A stretch of DNA of 64,000 bases from Mytilus trossulus (lineage: Eukaryota): positions 55,924,001 through 55,988,000 of the forward strand of contig NC_086379.1 of NCBI RefSeq assembly GCF_036588685.1, written 5' to 3'. Position numbers and translations under genes: made by a program. This document shows, piece after piece, positions 47,288-57,900 of this stretch. The notes beneath the pieces were generated by a model that saw only the letters and a list, made by a program, of their open reading frames with translations, was not told the DNA's origin and did not search any database. Position 1 is the first letter of the stretch; the number at the start of each line of letters is the position of its first letter.

Positions 47288-47713
47288 AGGCCATAGTTAT
47301 TATATTTTTAGTTTTACGAAATTTTTTGACAAAACCAATGGGTAGGAGGATGAAAAAAAAAAAAAAAAAAAACTGCTGCTGCTGATGCTTTTTTTTTAAT
47401 ACCAACCTTCAATATCAAAATTTTTTTTTTTCATTTCACAAGGAGATTTTCTACTAGTGTAACAACTATTTTTTTTTCTTGACAAGGTTTGAATTGAAAA
47501 TCAATGTGCAACAACTTACTAAATCACCAAGAGCATAAATTTAGATTCTTGCATGCAGTTATGAACTAAAATTTATTTATTTTTTGCATGAAAAACACTG
47601 GGTCGGAGGAGAAAAAAAATTAAAAATCAACATTTTTAATTTTATTTTTTTTCCTATTTGGCAAAAATTAGGGTAGGAGGCTTCGTAAAACTAAAAATAA
47701 AAAACTACGGCCT
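47288..47713. mobile_element. MITE with imperfect TIRs and 8-10 bp TSD
   Basis: AGGCCATAGTT..TTTTAGTTTTACGAA / TTCGTAAAACTAAAA..AACTACGGCCT; TATCATGCTT on both flanks. Confidence 0.7.
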
Positions 47714-47980
47714 TATCATGCTTATGCAAACGTTACAAATACATGTATTAGGACAAATTACCTACTGGCTCATATGAAAACTATTGAAACTTTGATGTAC
47801 AAAATAATTTAATTGTTGTTACTAAGAATTTTTTAGAAAGCATTATAAATGACTGGAATAAACAACCATTATTGGTTGTTGATTAGTTTATCTTTCAAGG
47901 TTCTATGCAATGTAAGGAAGACATTATGACAAGAATAGGTGAAACTTTTTAAATTTTTAGAACTTTTTATTTGCAGGGTG

Positions 47981-50900
47981 ATGTCAATATCTAAAGCATT
48001 ATTAAGTATAGCAGGAATAACTGCCGGAGCTGCTATCCTTATAAATCTACCTACTCAATTCTTCATGGCTACTGAGAAAGCTACGCTTCAGTATTTACAC
48101 ACTGCCAAACTACAGACAATAGATCAGACCAAAAACAATTTTTCAGTGAGTACATTATGTATTGCAAATCATTCATAATTGGATGTTATGTACATGTAAT
48201 GATATGACATGATGTCACTAAGTCATATCATTACGTCACATGTAAAAAATGTATAAGATTAAAGTGTAACATATGCAAATTTATTATCATTAAGTTTTAA
48301 TGATAAAGTATTTGACACCGATTGATATAAAACAAACTCTCTGAATATAAAGAGAACAAAATTACCAACTCCATTATGTCCAAGGAAAATTCAAATGAGA
48401 ATAATCCCTTATCGATTTGCAAAATCAAAAGTTAATAACACATCAAATCAATGGAAAACAACTGTCATATTCCCGACTTTGTGTCGGCAATTCCTTATGT
48501 TGAAAATGGTGGACTATACCTATTCAGACCTATTTAAAAGCAAAAGCTACAGAAATTATGTACTTTGAAGGATCCTCTTTTGGAATTTTTTATGATGCCT
48601 AGAATATCCATAAACTAAAGCATAAATTCAAAGGCAAATGGTAAGCAGTCTGAACTATGCTTATACAAAACCATCTTTGTATGCTATATGCTTAGAACCT
48701 TTATTGTATTGACCCATCAGAGCTATGTAGATACTGTCTATGTTACAGGCATCAGATCTATGGAAAGATAATGGTGTGGTTCTTATGGCAGTCAGAAGAC
48801 CAGGATGATCTTTGTGCAGAGAGGTAGTTTATAGTACTTTTACATTTTTATATAGATTTTATAATGAAAACAGTGCTTGACATGGACTACAGGATAGCTT
48901 TTATCTCTGTTGATTGTAAATCTTACTGTTGAATGTTTACACGCAAAACATGAGTTACAAATAAAAGAAAAGAAAAAAAATCAAATAGAGTAGAGATGAT
49001 AAACCAAAGGTCATTCCAAAGATAAATGTGTCAGTGTGTGTCAAATTAAGATAGACTTTGTCATGATACATTTGTCAAATTACAGTAAATGGAAAAAATT
49101 TCACAATCCATGAAGAATTTAACTTGACTCCAAAAAATTTTCATTAGTCAATACTTTATGAAGTTTGCAGTTTTTTGCATTAAAAAATGGTTTAAAAAGA
49201 TCAAGAAAACGTCAAAAAGAAAAAAAAACCAGCATTGTCTCCTGTGTCATAATTTCATTCTTTTTGGTTTTATATAAGAATGTTATTCTATTGTGTTAAG
49301 ACATATTATTCTTGTTTTTATTTCAGGAAGCCATTGGGCTGTCCTCTCTGCTACCTGAGCTTGAAGCCCATCGAGTCCAGCTGCATGCTGTAGTTCATGA
49401 GACTCTGGGAGTTGATGAGTTCAAACCATTTTTCAAAGGAAATGTTTATCTAGATTTAGAGGTATAAAAGTATTGATTATTTTTAAAAATCCATAAAATT
49501 GAAAATTTTCAATCAATTTTCGAACAAAAGACTTATGAGAATAGTCCTTTGAAAATTATTTAAGAATTCTTTCTGCAAGACATTATATGCAAATTTACCC
49601 ACCTCCTGTTAGGGAATTTTCTCTCTGTGTTGAAGACCAATTGGTGGGCTTGGGCTGTTTTCTGCTGTTTGGTTGGGTTATTGTATCTTGACACATTCCC
49701 CATGTCCATTTTCAAGTCTACTTTCTGGGTCAGTTATGTATTTTAAATCTAATTGTGAGGTAAAGAATATCAAAAGACCATCCCATTGTATTACTTGATT
49801 AATTTTACATTGATAAGCATGACTTAAAATTATTTGAATCCATGGACATACTATATCTATCCAATAAAAGATCAATACTGATGCTGATGCTGATTTGTAT
49901 TCATCTTTCATATTACCATATTCAGGTAAGTGAACATTTTTTAGTAATTGACAACTCTCTTTATTTGTAAATAGAGTATTCGTTTAATTCATTAGCCTTG
50001 TAAGCTACTTTTCAATACACTTGTTTTAAGCAACAAGTACAAAATTTACCTATTCATATTCTAAAGGACAACTTTGATAATAGTGTACCTTTATTAATGT
50101 GGAATTGTAAAAAAAAAATTATTGTAGAAAAAGTTTTATGGACCAAAAGAGAGGTGGACATCATTGTTTAGTCTTCTTAGATTTGGTGTCATGAAAAATA
50201 TCTATCGTGTAAAAAAGAAAAGTATTCCTGGTAACATGATAGGTGAAGGAAGACTTCTAGGAGGTAATTGATATGTTAAACTTAGTTAAGTAGAAATACA
50301 ATATAACATACTAGATTATATACTGAGGCTGTGCTATTTGCACATTCAATTGCGTTGACCATATATCCATTTGTGATATTCAGTCACTGACTGTATATCA
50401 CCTTTTTATGATTTAATTAATGTGTTACTGTAGAGTTATTTATGAGTTAATAAAAAATACAGGTTATTGAAAATTTAAGTTGTCTGCTCCAAATTAAAAA
50501 AATAGTTTTTACTCTTTTAAATAAAAATATTTTATTTGGAAGGGTTATAGGAGTTGCAGTTTAGAGAGATTAACCATAAATTGTCTCATAATATACATTT
50601 TATTTGTACTCTACTCAAAACAGGATAGAAATACTCAGCAAACTCCCACTTTCTACCTGTTTCAAAGACATGTACAAAAAATAATTAATTCTGAGACAAT
50701 GTATGGTTCTCCTATATATATCAAGTGTTCCATTGATATATTGGAGATTTTTAAAGGCACAATAAACTCTCAAAATTAAGGGCAACTATTTGGTCAAGTA
50801 TAATCAGTCAGGTTCTAATGTTAATTTACATGTAATGTATGCAGATATCAAATATTCATACCTGCCAAGTTTTCAAAATGCCCATGGGGGTTTTACGTGC

Positions 50901-51843
50901 AAGATGGCTGTCATACTCCTAAAAAAAACTTCAAGTGGGCCTTCAAATACAGTGTAATGATGTTTTTTGGCTTCTTCATACCTTTATAAGCCTCAATTCA
51001 TTGTAAAATTAATTGTTTTGTTAAAATTGTGGACATAATTTCTCTTTAAAAAAATCAATTTGGGAGCCTCCATGGGGGAAATCCCCCGCAAATAGTGACA
51101 GTTGGCAGGTATGAATATTTTCAACCTAGAAAGTATATTTTCCTAAATTCAAAATTTAGATGATGCTAAAGCATGAAATGAGGTCAAGGTCCCTTCAGGA
51201 TGTTCTTACTTAGTCAATGAAATGTACAATTTGTTGTGCATAGACACTGGCAGTATGTTTTCGTATGAAGATTTCTGAAGCGTTATCATTATGAAAAATA
51301 AAAGTTGCAGTAAGTTATTGAATTAGAGTTATCTTTCTTTGCATGAATTATTTCGTCTAAAACTTGGATTACCATTAAATGCATTTGAAGCTGCCACTTT
51401 GTATAGATGTACATGAAACATGCAGGACATATATCTATTTAGAGAAAAGCTCATTGAACTTTATGATATCATTGTGAAGACATTTTTATTCACTGAGAAA
51501 CGTGTAAAAAATTAGTCAACACATCAAGGAAATAATTATAAAAAGTAAATAAAAAAGTTTTTTTTCTATTTTAATGTCATAAATTTTGGTAAGATTACAA
51601 TGAGAAGTTCTAACATACCGTTATATTTGTTTTATTAAACTAATATAGTTTTGCATAGGTTTTATTTTTTTCAAGACAGAGTTAAGTGTACAATATTTAA
51701 AGATATCTTTTCTTTTTGAAGGTGTATACGTGATTGGACCAGGAGAGCAAGGTATATTATTTCAATATCATGAGAAAGAATTTGGTGATCATGCTGATCT
51801 GAAAGATATAATGGCTGCTGTTGAAAACATCAAATCTACATAA
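47981..51843 (+). CDS. PRXL2A: Peroxiredoxin-like 2A / FAM213A / selenoprotein U family protein, 210 aa, with in-frame UGA (predicted Sec) at 48806-48808
   Basis: Exons 47981-48145, 48749-48823, 49327-49461, 50128-50263, 51722-51843 (633 nt). Translation ...LWKDNGVVLMAVRRPG[U]SLCREEA...KKFYGP...GEGRLLGGVYVIGPGEQGILFQYHEKEFGD aligns end to end with PRXL2A, which has RRPGCFLCREEA. N-terminal hydrophobic anchor. SECIS downstream. Confidence 0.93.
50857..51113. mobile_element. MITE in a PRXL2A intron
   Basis: TIR CATACCTGCCAA / TTGGCAGGTATG flanked by AATATT on both sides. Confidence 0.7.
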
Positions 51844-52235
51844 TATATATATAACATTTGTTTACACCTAAGTGCCTTTTGATCAAACTATGCCTAAATA
51901 TAAATAGATTCTATGTTTTTCTATTTTTTGTTTATGACATCTGATTTTTCTTGAAATTTGACTCTCAAAAATTGCAAAAACAAATATATGTTCATTCGCT
52001 TACTTTTAGAGGTATTACAATTTGAATTTTGCATTTTTGGGGTAAAAACAGAAATTTCTTGTTTCAATACTTTTCCTCAAAAACTTTCAAATAAAAAAGA
52101 GAAATTTTCATCATTTTTCTTATCAAAGTATTCAAAGCTTACAATATTTAGTATATTAAAAGTAAAATAAAAAAAAATTAACCCCCAAAACAAATTCAAA
52201 ATAGAAAGTCCCTGAACAAATAGCAAAATCAAAGC

Positions 52236-52385
52236 TCAAACAAAATCAAGGTTAAATGCAATACAATTTGTGTTACAAATGTCAGATAAAATAAAAAGTC
52301 TCAAACAAAATCAAGGTTAAATGCAATACAATTTGTTGTCAGATAAAATAAAAAGTCTCAAACAAAATCAAGGTTAAATACAAAA
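52236..52385. repeat. ~60-bp tandem duplication in the PRXL2A 3' UTR
   Basis: CTCAAACAAAATCAAGGTTAAAT occurs three times. Confidence 0.8.
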
Positions 52386-53514
52386 CTATTTGTGTGACAT
52401 CTTACAGTAATTGATGAGATAAGTCATCACCTGTTACTTTTACATGCTCTTTACGGTATTGATTTTTATTTTAGTTCAAGGCTACACAAACATCAGTTAA
52501 AGGATGAATAATAAGTCTTGTAACTTAATGCTTCTGCCTTTACTTTGAAGTATGTTGCTTTTGTCTTTTACTTGCAAAACTCATCAAAATAGAAACTTTT
52601 GACAATCTTTCACATTTATTTTTTGAAATTAGCATTTCTTCCCTACAAATTCTAGTTTTATTAGTGTCATAACAAAAGCAGATTTATATAAAGATGATAA
52701 TCAAAATATTTCTATTTAATGCCATAAATAAATGATAAAAGGATTGTTTGACCACCACATTATAGTTGGGTTCAATGTTTATGTATTTTTATATTGTATA
52801 TTAATTAGAACAAAGTATTAGAAGTATATTTAAAATGTTTAAACAGTTGTATTTTCTGATATTATTTTATTTTCATTACATGACAAATATAAACAAACAG
52901 ATATTGTGAATTATATATGGTTAGTGAGAGTACATTTTTTTTAAAGGTACATGTATTAGCACATTAATGCGCCTTTAAAACAGAAAACTAATTTAAAAAT
53001 TCTTGGTTAGCTATGGATATCATATGATTGCTGGCAATGTCAATACTAGTACACTTTTGATAAGAAAGTCAGTTTAAACAAATGTAAGACAATAAGTTTA
53101 CTTCTTTTAATTGATTTCATACAAAAGTGAAACAGAAGTTTATTCATGATTAATAGATGGAAGAGTATCTTCAGCAAGTTTACAGTAAAAAAAAATATCT
53201 TTAGATTTTACTGTATTTTTAACATATAAATTCTTTTGGTGTTGCTGTTAGCATTTCACCTTGAAGCTACCATGAAGCTGATAGTAGAACCCGATTGTTT
53301 TTGTTCCTCACAGATAAAATTGGTGTTAAGATAAAAATGGTGCAATGATTTGCATTGCCTCTGTTATGTATATTTGCCATGTTGTGACCAATGTTATATT
53401 TTATTTGTTATGTTGTGACCAATGTTGTTTTATATGCCCTGTTGTTGCCTGAGTTATGTTTATTAGCCACATTGTTGTCTGTATTATGATTTATGTGCCA
53501 TGTTGAAAGGATTT

Positions 53515-53583
53515 TATACCATACCTATGATATCTGAAGTATAAATTTTCTTACTACTTTAGATGGATCTTCTAATGGTTATA
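53515..53583 (+). promoter_or_regulatory. SECIS element (type I) in the PRXL2A/SelU 3' UTR
   Basis: ATGA(53527-53530)-T-ATCTGAAGTA-[TAAATTTTCTTAC]-TACTTTAGAT-GGAT. UGAU/GGAU non-Watson-Crick quartet, 10-bp helix II (one G.U), AAA 12 nt after AUGA, lower helix ACCAT/ATGGT. Lies upstream of AATAAA at ~53910. Confidence 0.88.
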
Positions 53584-54959
53584 TATTATCCTGACAATGT
53601 TGCATCTAGTTTCATATTATTGTAGTGCCACAAAATCATTGGTCATGTTGACCTTATAAAAACTGTGTTCATTCTATATGTTAGGTAGCTTTTGAGCATA
53701 ATTCAAGAGCTAGTTTAGATATGATTATATTCCAGTATTCCTCTAGTTATTCCCTGGGAGTTGTTTATATTCAGAAATCATTGGGTGATTTTTTTTGTTG
53801 TGTTTGAGGGCTTTTTAAATAGCCTTATCAGCATTATTGACAATTTGATATTAGAAATTAGAGTTATTTGTTATCTAAGTATATTGTTTTATATGTTTTA
53901 TGATGTTTAAATAAAGTACAAATTTTAATTACACTTTTTTAGTCTTATTTTGTGAAGAAAGACCATACTAGCTCCTGACCCCTATAGAAATAAAATGCTC
54001 CTCAGTGGGAAGTATGATACCACATACATTGGACCCTGAACATTAAGGGCAAGTATATTCACAGCATTCAAGTTTGATACAGGTTTGAATTTGAATTTTG
54101 ATTGAATATTTGACACAGAATGGATGTTGTCTAAGAACTTTGAAATTGGACATCTACATATTATGGTCTGATATCCAAACTTCAAATTTTAATAAAATCT
54201 ATCAAAGTTGAATTTTAGACCCTTTGGACCTCAATGTTGACCAATTTGATAACAGGGTAAAAAATCCAAAATCAAAATATGATTCAGCATATCAAAGAAC
54301 CAAATATATTCAATTTTTGTTGAAATCAAATAAATTTTGATTAAGGACCCTTAAATTTAACTGCTTTGAAAACAGAGCCTAATGTAAAAAAAATCCTCAC
54401 TGAATCCAAAGTTGTTTCATACAATAACAAAACAAGAGTGCATAAACTGAAATGTTTCATCTGCTTTACTCACCAAGATTGATTTTATGATAGTCCTAAA
54501 GCAAGTATCATAATGAAACATGATAATGATGTCAAGGGCATACAAAAACTGCCAGACTGACATGTACACAATTTACATTCACCAAATAAAGTTGACTTAT
54601 TGCCTAAAGTATCAGAAAACAGACCAAAACACAAACAAGAGTGTACACACTGAAATGTTACGCCTTCTTTACTGACCATTGATTTTATATTGTTAGTCCT
54701 AAATATAAAGCTTTTCTACAAGTATCACACACACTTAACATGATCCAAGAAAATGAGTTAAGGTCAGATAAACCGAATGGGAAATATTTGTACATCTTAC
54801 AATCATTAAAAACACAAAATATAGTTGACTTATTGCCTATAATTTCTAAGAAACAGACTTTACAAGGAAAAATAAACATTGACCAATGAACCATGAAAAT
54901 GAGGTTGAGGTCAGATGAACCATGCCAGACAGACATGTACACCTTACAATCCATCTATA

Positions 54960-57900
54960 TGTTAGCGGCAATAAGTGAAATTAGGCATTAAGCTGAAATC
55001 CTAGGCAATAAGCTAACGCCTAGGCATTAATTCTATTACCTAAATGATGTTAGACATTAGTCTTAATTCCTAGGATTTAAGCTTATATCCTGAAAAATGT
55101 AAGCAGGCATTAAGCTTAATGCCTAAAATGTAAATGCGAGTAAATAAAAGACATTTATTCATTTAAATTAAAATACATTTGGTACATAATAACATTATGA
55201 AAACTGTGGCCTGTTTATCGACACTGTCTCAACATTAGTCCTATGAGATATTCTTAGGACAGAAATTATGATATAGTTAGGATCGACTAACAACATTTCT
55301 CAGCATGCTGCATATCGAAGCTATCTGAGGATTGTATTAGCTGGGATGTCCGAAGTATTGGCGTAAAAAAAAAATAGCAAATGAAAATATTGTATCAAAT
55401 TCAACCAAAAATTTTAATTAATTATTAGAAAATAATTATTAGTTTTAAATAAAAAGTTATAAATAATGTTTATACATGTATTATAATTGTAGATCTAAAC
55501 TCTTTAAAACAAAATATTAAAAAGTAAAAAATTATGACTACGTTTTATATTAGAATTGAACAAAATAATTGTAAATAGTTAAAATTAAATATATAATCGG
55601 TAAAATCATTTTATGTTTTGAGGGACGTCACAGTTCCGTACTTAAAAGATCATATGGAAATACTTCAACTATTTCATTTTATTACTGCAAAAAATAATAT
55701 ACGTTTGAAAATGAGCAGAAGAACAAACTTGAGTTTCACCGATTTTAACGATGCAAAAGTACAGAGCCCAGTGTCACCCTAAATATAAAAAAAAAGATGT
55801 GGCATGATTGCCAATATGACAAATCTCCACTAGAGACCAGAAATAAATTCCCTAGTAAAATATGTTATTTATATTAAAATGCATCAAATAATATTTTAGA
55901 AATATAAAAACTTGATAGAAATTAGTGTTGGAAAATCTCTTTGTTATCACAAATTGTGGAACTATTCACAAAGATAATTTAGTTATCCAATAAAAAGCCG
56001 GATGCTCCGCAGGGCGTAGCTTTATACGACCGCAGAGGTTGAACCCTGAACGGTTGGGGCAAGTATGGACACAACATTCAAGCTGGATTCCGCTCTAAAT
56101 TTGGATTGTGATTAAATAGTTGACACAGCATAGGTTTCTGACACAGAATGAATGTATTCAAATGAACTTAAAATTTTTGTTTTCTCTTAGAGCAATTCAC
56201 TATGCTGTTGAATATTAATCCTCTCAAAAAATGTTTGAAGAAATTTTCTTTTTATTTATGAAATTTCAAATGAGAAAAATTGAACCCAATTTTTTAATCA
56301 CATCCCCCTTTCCCTTATTCCAAAACTAATTTCAATTAAAATATTCTAATGGAGTTTGCAACAATTACTACTCATTTAAATACATCATAAAATATTAAGA
56401 TGTAAAAAAACTGCTTGTTATCACTGAATGGTAAAGATTATTTAAATTTATCAGTTGGTAGTAAAAAGTGAATATACATTGTATATTGTATATAACAAAG
56501 ATTTAAGTTGATTCTGGACAAAGAAAGATAACTCCAATTAAAAAAAATTCTTGCAGATATTTCTTGCTTACTATACTGGACAAAGAAAGATAACTCTTAA
56601 TTAAAAAAAAAATTGCTATTTCACAATATTGTGAAATTAGATATTTCTTGCCATTGCACAATACTGTGCAATTGAAAAGACTTGCTATTGCACAATACTT
56701 AATATAATAATTTTAGATCCTGATTTGGACCAACTTGAAAACTGGGCCCATAATCCAAAATCTAAGTACATGTTTAGATTCAGCATATCAAAGAGGCCCA
56801 AGAATTTAATTTTTGTTAAAATCAAACTTAGTTTAATTTTGGACTCTTTGCACTTTAATTTAGACCAATTTTAAAACTGGACCAAAAATTAAGAATCTAC
56901 ATACACAGTTAGATTTGGCATATCAAAGAACCCCAATTATTCAATTTTTGATGAAATCAAACAATGTTTAATTTTGGACCTCGATTTAGGCCAACTTCAA
57001 AACTGGGCCAATAATCAAAAATCTAAGTACATTTTTAGATTCAGCATATCAAAGAACCCCAAGGTTTCAATTTTTGTAAAAATCAAACTAAGTTTAATTT
57101 TGGACCCTTTGGACCTTAATGTAGACCAATTTGAAAACGAGACCAAAAATTAAGAATCTACTTACACAGTTAGATTCGGCATATTAAAGAACCCCTTTGG
57201 GCCCCTTTTTCCTTAACTGTTGGGACCAAAACTCCCAAAATTAATACCAACCTTCCTTTCATAGTCAAAAACCTTGTGTTTAAATTTCATAGATTTCTAT
57301 TTACTTATACTAACGCTATGGTGCGAAAACCAAGAAAAATGCTTATTTGGGTCCCTTTTTGGCCCCTAATTCCTAAACTGTTGGGACCGAAACTCCCAAA
57401 ATCAATACCAACCTTCCTTTTGTGGTCATAAACATTGTGTTTAAATTTCATTGATTTCTATTTACTTTAACTAAAGTTATTGTGCGAAAACCAAGAATAA
57501 TGTTTATTTGGGCCCTTTTTTGGCCCCTAATTCCTAAACTGTTGAAACCAAAACTCCCAAAATCAATCCCAACCTTTCTTTTGTGGTCATAAACTTTGTG
57601 TCAAAATTTCATAGATTTCTATTAACTTAAACTAAAGTTATAGTGCGAAAACCAAGAAAATGCTTATTTGGGCCCTTTTTGGCCCCTAATTCCTAAAATG
57701 TTGGGACCAAAACTCCCAAAATCAATACCAGCCTTCCTTTTATGGTCATAAACCTTGTGTTAAAATTTCATAGATTTCTATTCACTTTTACTAAAGTTAG
57801 AGTGCGAAAACTAAAAGTATTCGGACGACGATGACGACGCAGACGACGACGCCAACGTGATAGCAATATACGACGAAAATTTTTTCAAAATTTGCGGTCG

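Follow-up and report, generated by a model that had tools for sequence, protein, structure and literature searches.

The window, a 64,000-nucleotide stretch of Mytilus trossulus contig NC_086379.1, carries a PRXL2A-like gene on its + strand (Table 1). Reading of the sequence, the translations and a script gave five GT..AG-bounded coding exons of 165, 75, 135, 136 and 122 nt (633 nt in total), with the donors GTGAGT, GTAGTT, GTATAA and GTAATT and with acceptors that all ended in AG. The joined exon lengths yielded 210 codons followed by a TAA at 51841-51843. By script and translations, the sole in-frame stop before this TAA was the TGA at 48806-48808; exon 2 ends with VRRPG, this stop and SLCRE, and exon 3 begins with EA. 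An AG acceptor was found at 47975-47976, ahead of the ATG exon, and one contig carried 104 extra letters 5' of that exon, indicating at least one untranslated upstream exon. Exon 3 was present as a single copy in the genome.

Table 1. Features of the SelU1 (PRXL2A) locus, in positions of the window.
Feature	Position	Strand	Remarks
Coding exon 1	47981..48145	+	55 codons; start ATG; hydrophobic N-terminal segment
Coding exon 2	48749..48823	+	25 codons; predicted redox motif U-S-L-C
In-frame TGA, predicted to be read as Sec codon	48806..48808	+	codon 75
Coding exon 3	49327..49461	+	45 codons; PF13911 match just under the cut-off
Coding exon 4	50128..50263	+	45 codons + 1 nt, phase 1; PRXL2A relatives matched in order
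Last exon, coding part	51722..51843	+	2 nt + 39 codons + TAA
3'UTR, minimal extent	51844..53790	+	RNA-type contig coverage
Predicted SECIS	53518..53579	+	Rfam SECIS_1, fold, scan

Homology searches were run exon by exon. Each exon piece matched named PRXL2A/FAM213A proteins, in order: exon 1 matched N-terminal parts of PRXL2A proteins, those of Patella and Mya among them, and exons 3-5 were 48-76% identical to PRXL2A proteins, with exon 5 reaching 57-70% against the C-termini of several taxa. In the comparison with Mya arenaria, the sequence downstream of the TGA was conserved more strongly than that upstream (75.6% identity to a PXL2A-like protein for exon 3 vs 44% for exon 1). Exon 3 matched Pfam PF13911 (AhpC-TSA_2) over profile positions 2-43 of 114 with 26.0 bits (below the cut-off of 27; E 1.2e-5) when single exons were scanned; the Pfam support comes from one exon because the searches went exon by exon, and all full-length relatives carried PF13911. 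The best 19-residue Kyte-Doolittle mean was 1.89, at residues 3-21, in a segment conserved in the mollusc relatives, and this hydrophobic segment of exon 1 is a probable signal-anchor or transmembrane helix. The initial annotation had described an intact 210-codon frame of five exons broken only by the TGA, conserved and free of other lesions on both sides, and had assigned it to the SelU/PRXL2A family, as a membrane-anchored thioredoxin-fold protein with a UxxC redox motif. The script, the translations and the contig joints given below agree with this frame, the ordered PRXL2A matches and the uninterrupted reading across 210 codons bear out the conservation, and the homologues and the hydropathy support the family.

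All named matches were PRXL2A, FAM213A or selenoprotein U 1a, and neither PRXL2B nor PRXL2C occurred among the named matches of the exon pieces or the close relatives. PRXL2B (SelU3, prostamide/prostaglandin F synthase) and PRXL2C (SelU2, AAED1) have a thioredoxin-like fold, a C/UxxC centre and PF13911, features that are predicted for the mussel gene too; they are paralogous subfamilies, set apart from it by the named matches. Among the relatives, a solved structure exists only for PRXL2B (9us9), which scored 65 bits against P0085, a relative of the Cys form.

The redox motif R-R-P-G-[U/C]-x-x-C-R-E-E-A was present across exons 2 and 3, with the TGA at the U/C position. The TGA aligned with the first Cys of CxxC in P0166, P0097, P0038, P0031 and others, which is Cys85 in guinea-pig PRXL2A (P0166). 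Mammalian PRXL2A (FAM213A, adiporedoxin, PAMM) belongs to the orthologous family and has an identical motif context (guinea pig RRPG-C-F-L-C-REEA), but it has Cys at the predicted Sec position of the mussel gene and lacks a SECIS. The mammalian protein is an ER transmembrane oxidoreductase that acts via CXXC (PMC4632174). The mussel product may have a membrane or ER location and a catalytic role; the adipocyte and osteoclast functions of mammalian PRXL2A are not transferable to a mollusc. SelU1 (SELENOU) of fish, birds and invertebrates is of the same family and resembles the mussel gene in the Sec position within R-R-P-G-U-x-x-C-R-E-E-A, in having a SECIS in the 3'UTR whose core is ATGA, in its length of ~200-230 residues and in an N-terminal hydrophobic segment.

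Expression and splicing were examined in contigs assembled from runs X5, X7 and X14 rather than in raw reads; the runs represent two organisms and three studies. The joints 48145>48749, 48823>49327, 49461>50128 and 50263>51722 were found in these contigs and coincided exactly with the predicted exon borders (three of the four were listed with 'cut +2'). Depth was ~0 in the introns in all three runs, and the depth of the 3'UTR resembled that of the exons. The 3'UTR was covered to ~53750-53790, the predicted SECIS included: RNA-type contigs tiled 51720-52264 and 52350-53788, one X5 contig spanned 51720 to 52264, and the coverage gap at 52264-52350 coincided with a 57-nt tandem repeat. There may be a longer 3'UTR form, with an AATAAA at 53910. 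The gene is real and expressed.

Seen by itself, a stop codon within the frame of a conserved gene looks like a pseudogene, and the TGA might stem from a nonsense mutation or from misassembly of a Cys-form gene. The spliced contigs of the three runs kept exon 2 with both flanking joints, which answers the call for an RNA check of the TGA-bearing exon. A TGC or TGT at this codon, raised earlier as a sign of assembly error, was looked for in the assembled contigs: no other letter at 48806-48808 occurred among the rows listed of the contig difference table, to which this result applies, and a change at 48785 was listed for the same contigs. The codon also recurred in independent sequences. Four 74-residue ORFs from ~1-kb spliced contigs, independent variants with 76-96% identity in exon 1, all ended in VRRPG at the TGA codon. 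In addition, 52 unrelated metagenome or metatranscriptome contigs matched M-x-V-R-R-P-G-TGA-x-x-C-R-E, a pattern fixed to TGA at the motif codon to avoid mammalian Cys forms, and all 52 were SelU-like; none looked human. At least 18 of the 52 stayed in frame for ~130-150 codons, and the borders of exon 2 (A-S-x-L-W ... C-R-E followed by GT) recurred in many environmental genomic contigs. A SECIS was found downstream in some related TGA-bearing transcripts. Together with the 210 codons that are otherwise without lesions and the SECIS of the mussel gene, these data leave a negligible probability that the locus is a pseudogene or that a Cys-form gene was assembled wrongly.

The predicted SECIS lies 1.7 kb past the stop codon, within the transcribed 3'UTR. 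Helix I is formed by 53518-53522 and 53575-53579 and the 11-bp helix II by 53531-53541 and 53555-53565; the ATGA core occupies 53527-53530, the GA 53566-53567, and the loop holds AAA at 53543-53545. The fold had a z-score of -3.5. When 161 nt were searched, Rfam SECIS_1 scored 26.8 bits (E 0.0014), short of its gathering score of 35; the SECIS of related SelU transcripts scored 29-33.5 bits, likewise below 35. An Rfam search over 3.3 kb of the UTR returned no SECIS, a filter effect, as the same element scored in the 161-nt search. A custom scan gave one match on the + strand against 0.13 expected per window for both strands. This scanner is specific but insensitive, its design was guided by the candidate at 53518-53579, and it recovered none of the SECIS of the related transcripts. 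A SECIS-like match on the minus strand at 57563-57612 had no Rfam support and did not match SECIS model R1, and it was taken as a chance match. A dispersed relic of Naiad retrotransposons was also considered as the origin of the element and was ruled out, since the 141-nt stretch that holds it was single copy in the 1.3-Gb genome.

The Rfam score under the gathering threshold is what would favor a true selenoprotein gene in which 53518-53579 is not a working SECIS, the real one lying elsewhere and this one being a chance or transposon-derived look-alike. Against this, 53518-53579 was the only 3'UTR candidate in two scans, is single copy and transcribed, and has all the canonical features, and its helix II showed compensatory changes relative to the SECIS of the related transcripts. 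We regard a non-working element as unlikely. Compared with other SelU1 genes, the mussel SECIS is unusually distant from the stop and lies in an AT-rich UTR with tandem repeats.

The search for Sec machinery covered tRNA-Sec and SepSecS. The genome contains two tRNA-Sec genes (79.6 and 77 bits), both with the anticodon TCA, and a multi-exon SepSecS gene. Gene callers yield exactly a 74-residue ORF at this locus, as would be expected if the UGA terminates translation and the product is a 74-residue N-terminal peptide, or if the mRNA is merely degraded, with the downstream exons untranslated. However, the downstream exons are the best conserved ones (exons 3 and 5, above) and keep their frame and splice phases, and such an mRNA would have no use for the SECIS and the Sec machinery. 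Termination at the UGA is very improbable. The proposal that the TGA is read as a Sec codon is upheld by the SECIS and the Sec machinery, by the homologues and the RNA contigs, and by the way annotation goes wrong in relatives, and actual insertion of Sec at the UGA is predicted on these grounds.

We consider it very likely that the locus is a single-copy SelU1 (PRXL2A/FAM213A/adiporedoxin/PAMM) orthologue, in which UGA codon 75 is read as Sec through the SECIS and the Sec machinery to give a 210-residue, membrane-anchored U-x-x-C oxidoreductase. In the mechanism that we propose, an mRNA of at least five coding exons with a 3'UTR of ~1.9 kb would be translated through the UGA under the direction of the SECIS, with tRNA-Sec and SepSecS supplying the machinery. 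The thioredoxin-like product would be held by its N-terminal anchor; within its redox centre, Sec would attack, and a Cys three residues further on would resolve it. Selenium-dependent NMD of the mRNA, which the initial annotation also predicted, is a weaker point and may be expected by extrapolation of the mammalian exon-junction rule only.

Ordinary gene finders err on this locus because its active-site codon resembles a stop. The annotated bivalve orthologues of Mya, Mactra and Dreissena were truncated or mis-spliced at the TGA position, as the initial annotation had anticipated for automated pipelines, and no correct public protein model was found for the Mytilus trossulus SelU1 orthologue. 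A residue C in rows of the protein collection is not safely Cys. The bird PRXL2A row P0146 has C where the literature reports Sec, which indicates that the collection may write U as C; whether the RefSeq gastropod rows stand for Sec or for Cys is thus ambiguous.

The surprise value of the finding is low, because Sec is the already described state of SelU1 in invertebrates, all of which were reported as Sec forms (PMC3473315). The gene is as specialists would expect, and it leaves the understanding of SelU and of Sec decoding unchanged. Its main value lies in annotation, as a clean and well-supported case of a selenoprotein for which standard pipelines give truncated, mis-spliced or missing models in bivalves. 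It also enlarges by one the selenoproteome of a group that matters in ecotoxicology, mussels being sentinels for selenium and metals. A wider scenario is tentative and rather doubtful: the Sec form of SelU1 may have been kept in bivalves and heterobranch snails, with gene models that all break at the codon, several other gastropod lineages (Patella, Littorina, Babylonia) may have been independently converted to Cys, and the three junctions after the UGA may make the bivalve mRNA a selenium-sensing NMD target. If true, Sec/Cys exchange could be studied in a mollusc model, and mussels would gain a transcript that marks their selenium status.

The gene under study in Mytilus trossulus, a SelU1/PRXL2A (FAM213A) homologue, was modeled by reading window positions 47700-54000, translating the pieces, and scripting the coordinates. 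The five coding exons gave a frame of 210 codons closed by TAA, and each of the four introns was bounded by GT and AG. Only the TGA at 48806-48808 interrupted the frame, its surroundings reading V-R-R-P-G-TGA-S-L-C-R-E. Translation and script thus confirmed the five-exon, 210-codon frame with a single TGA proposed in the initial annotation. The N-terminus was hydrophobic (mean hydropathy 1.89 over residues 3-21), and exon 3 was present as a single copy in the 1.30-Gb genome.

Coding exons and parts of the candidate SECIS element (window positions)
Feature	Position	Strand	Details
Coding exon 1	47981-48145	+	165 nt; sequence reading, translation, coordinate script
Coding exon 2	48749-48823	+	75 nt; same basis; carries the TGA
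Coding exon 3	49327-49461	+	135 nt; same basis
Coding exon 4	50128-50263	+	136 nt; same basis
Coding exon 5	51722-51843	+	122 nt; same basis
SECIS	53518-53579	+	Rfam SECIS_1, 26.8 bits, E 0.0014 (161-nt search)
SECIS helix I	53518-53522 / 53575-53579		paired
SECIS ATGA core	53527-53530		
SECIS helix II	53531-53541 / 53555-53565		paired, 11 bp
SECIS apical-loop AAA	53543-53545		
SECIS GA	53566-53567		

Family searches were run exon by exon, with single exons rather than a spliced or read-through protein as queries. Exon 3 alone matched Pfam PF13911 (AhpC/TSA_2; 26 bits, E 1.2e-5) and yielded 56 matches among 1.84 billion protein representatives, every named one being peroxiredoxin-like 2A / FAM213A. 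Amphioxus and Mya relatives used as seeds retrieved PRXL2A proteins by the hundred, along with a single 'selenoprotein U 1a'. When each exon piece was compared with twelve PRXL2A relatives by BLAST, the order was collinear throughout. On guinea-pig PRXL2A, the match of the piece before the TGA closed with R-R-P-G at residue 84, and that of the following piece began at residue 86-87, which places the TGA on guinea-pig Cys85, the first Cys of C-F-L-C. This agrees with the earlier assignment of the TGA to the first Cys of CxxC; the motif quoted there for human was seen in the guinea-pig row. Sec may be recorded as C in the protein collection, since one bird row has C where the literature has Sec, so the C seen in Babylonia and Littorina may stand for either residue.

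The sequence-based reading of the TGA as a Sec codon is supported by five concordant lines of evidence, one of which, the breaks in public gene models, is described further below. The first is that conservation after the TGA exceeded that before it, since BLAST identity to Mya was 75.6% in exon 3 and 58% in exon 5 versus 44% in exon 1. The exon 1 search recovered, from contigs about 1 kb long, four different ORFs of 74 residues (exon 1 identity 96, 95, 78, and 76%), in which exon 1 was spliced to exon 2 and all of which terminated at V-R-R-P-G, indicating a stop at the identical codon in more divergent relatives. The degenerate DNA pattern M-x-V-R-R-P-G-TGA-x-x-C-R-E was found in 52 metagenome or metatranscriptome contigs, all 52 SelU-like and none resembling human sequence; in at least 18 of them the open frame extended over roughly 130-150 further codons that were clearly PRXL2A, and the genomic ones shared the exon 2 borders (starting A-S-x-L-W, ending C-R-E then GT). 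The Sec machinery was represented by two tRNA-Sec genes with anticodon TCA, on genome contigs C9 and C1, and a multi-exon SepSecS gene.

Five metagenome contigs (L011, L017, L024, L025, and L055) carried intronless SelU-like genes with R-R-P-G-TGA-x-x-C-R-E and divergent downstream sequence. They are probably from protists or algae, which suggests that the Sec codon of the SelU family is kept well beyond animals. Long tandem tRNA-like arrays with a spacing of 891-900 bp were observed on contig C10 of the searched genome G000 (63843916-63855579 and 64461689-64492367); at 45.9 bits against the tRNA-Sec model, just below the cut-off, they probably represent amplification of a tRNA with a long variable arm, of Ser or Leu type, rather than tRNA-Sec.

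The candidate SECIS contained all canonical parts. Its SECIS_1 match fell short of the gathering score (35) and was filtered out when 3.3 kb was searched. Its fold beat 200 of 200 shuffles (z = -3.5), and the stretch was single copy in the genome, which speaks against a dispersed relic of Naiad retrotransposons. In a strict scan, designed after the candidate had already been seen, it was the sole plus-strand match in the window (0.13 expected per window, both strands). Three of the TGA-bearing environmental transcripts also had sense-strand SECIS_1 matches further downstream, with scores of 29-33.5 bits, all below gathering. Alignment with these three elements, which had been picked by a similar model, kept 10 pairs of helix II, seven with compensatory changes. 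The resulting four-sequence model, R1, found two further likely SECIS in environmental contigs L023 and L036, and over the window it gave nothing above 16 bits besides the candidate. A second hairpin, at 57563-57612 on the minus strand, passed the strict scan with neither an Rfam SECIS match nor an R1 match and is probably due to chance.

Expression was assessed in Logan contigs, not raw reads, which are informative on presence and joints rather than ends or levels. Runs were located with one 6000-base query (47950-53949), and four were compared: X5 and X7 (organism A, two studies), X14 (organism C), and X2 (a DNA run of low depth). Intron bins were at nearly zero depth in X5, X7, and X14 and were covered in X2, so the three runs behave as RNA. 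The joints 48145>48749, 48823>49327, 49461>50128, and 50263>51722 were present in contigs of each of the three, demonstrating that the TGA exon is kept in transcripts, a check the initial annotation had called for. No change at 48806-48808 was among the differences listed for the run contigs, which do include one at 48785; this check covers the better-supported differences, as opposed to 163 less-supported ones, and holds for the three RNA-type runs rather than for low-depth X2. Contigs tiled the 3'UTR, starting at 51720 and reaching about 53750-53790, with a single break (52264-52350), which coincides with a 57-nt tandem repeat. An AG acceptor directly before the ATG exon (47975-47980 region) and 104 extra 5' letters upstream of the query stretch in an RNA-type contig (X14, record 1) indicate at least one untranslated exon upstream.

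Several repeats were observed in the gene. A MITE-like element in intron 4 (50850-51120) had perfect 19-nt terminal inverted repeats (50850-50868 / 51102-51120); its contig depth, thousands in each of the four runs, and the many contigs breaking at 50857 and 51113 indicate a very high-copy family. Intron 1 contained a very high-copy interspersed repeat (48350-48549; summed depth about 37,600 in X2), part of which recurs in the 3'UTR (52150-52349), where contigs leave the UTR near 52234 and resume further back, near 48437. This copy adjoins the 57-nt tandem repeat (2.8 copies, 52231-52400), and a 31-nt tandem repeat (2.8 copies, 53362-53445) lies just upstream of the SECIS.

Public models of Mya, Biomphalaria, Bulinus, amphioxus, and Labeo omitted V-R-R-P-G-U-x-x-C-R-E, that of Mactra omitted exon 2, and that of Dreissena began M-C-R-A-E-A, immediately past the Sec-codon position; three unnamed proteins had W there, the TGA being read as Trp. 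The expected failure of automated annotation was thus observed, with relatives' models breaking exactly at the TGA. Among the database relatives retrieved, no bivalve orthologue was found to have a correct public model, so the gene is hidden from annotation and the practical point made initially was right.

SelU is known from fish, birds, and unicellular eukaryotes. Jiang et al. (2012; PMC3473315) reported Sec-containing SelU in six of six invertebrates studied, including the mollusc Lottia, and stated that Sec is present in every invertebrate SelU1 member; a Sec form in a bivalve is therefore expected.

In the proposed mechanism, UGA-75 would be decoded as Sec with the aid of the distal SECIS. 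The next three exon junctions follow the UGA at distances of 15, 150, and 286 nt, so that under the mammalian exon-junction rule, applied here to a mollusc, failed Sec decoding would be predicted to trigger NMD. The product would have 210 residues and be a thioredoxin-like oxidoreductase whose center is U-x-x-C and whose N-terminus is hydrophobic. Mammalian adiporedoxin/PRXL2A is an ER transmembrane oxidoreductase acting via its CXXC site (PMC4632174), and by homology the role of the Mytilus protein is most likely that of a membrane-anchored thiol/selenol-disulfide oxidoreductase.
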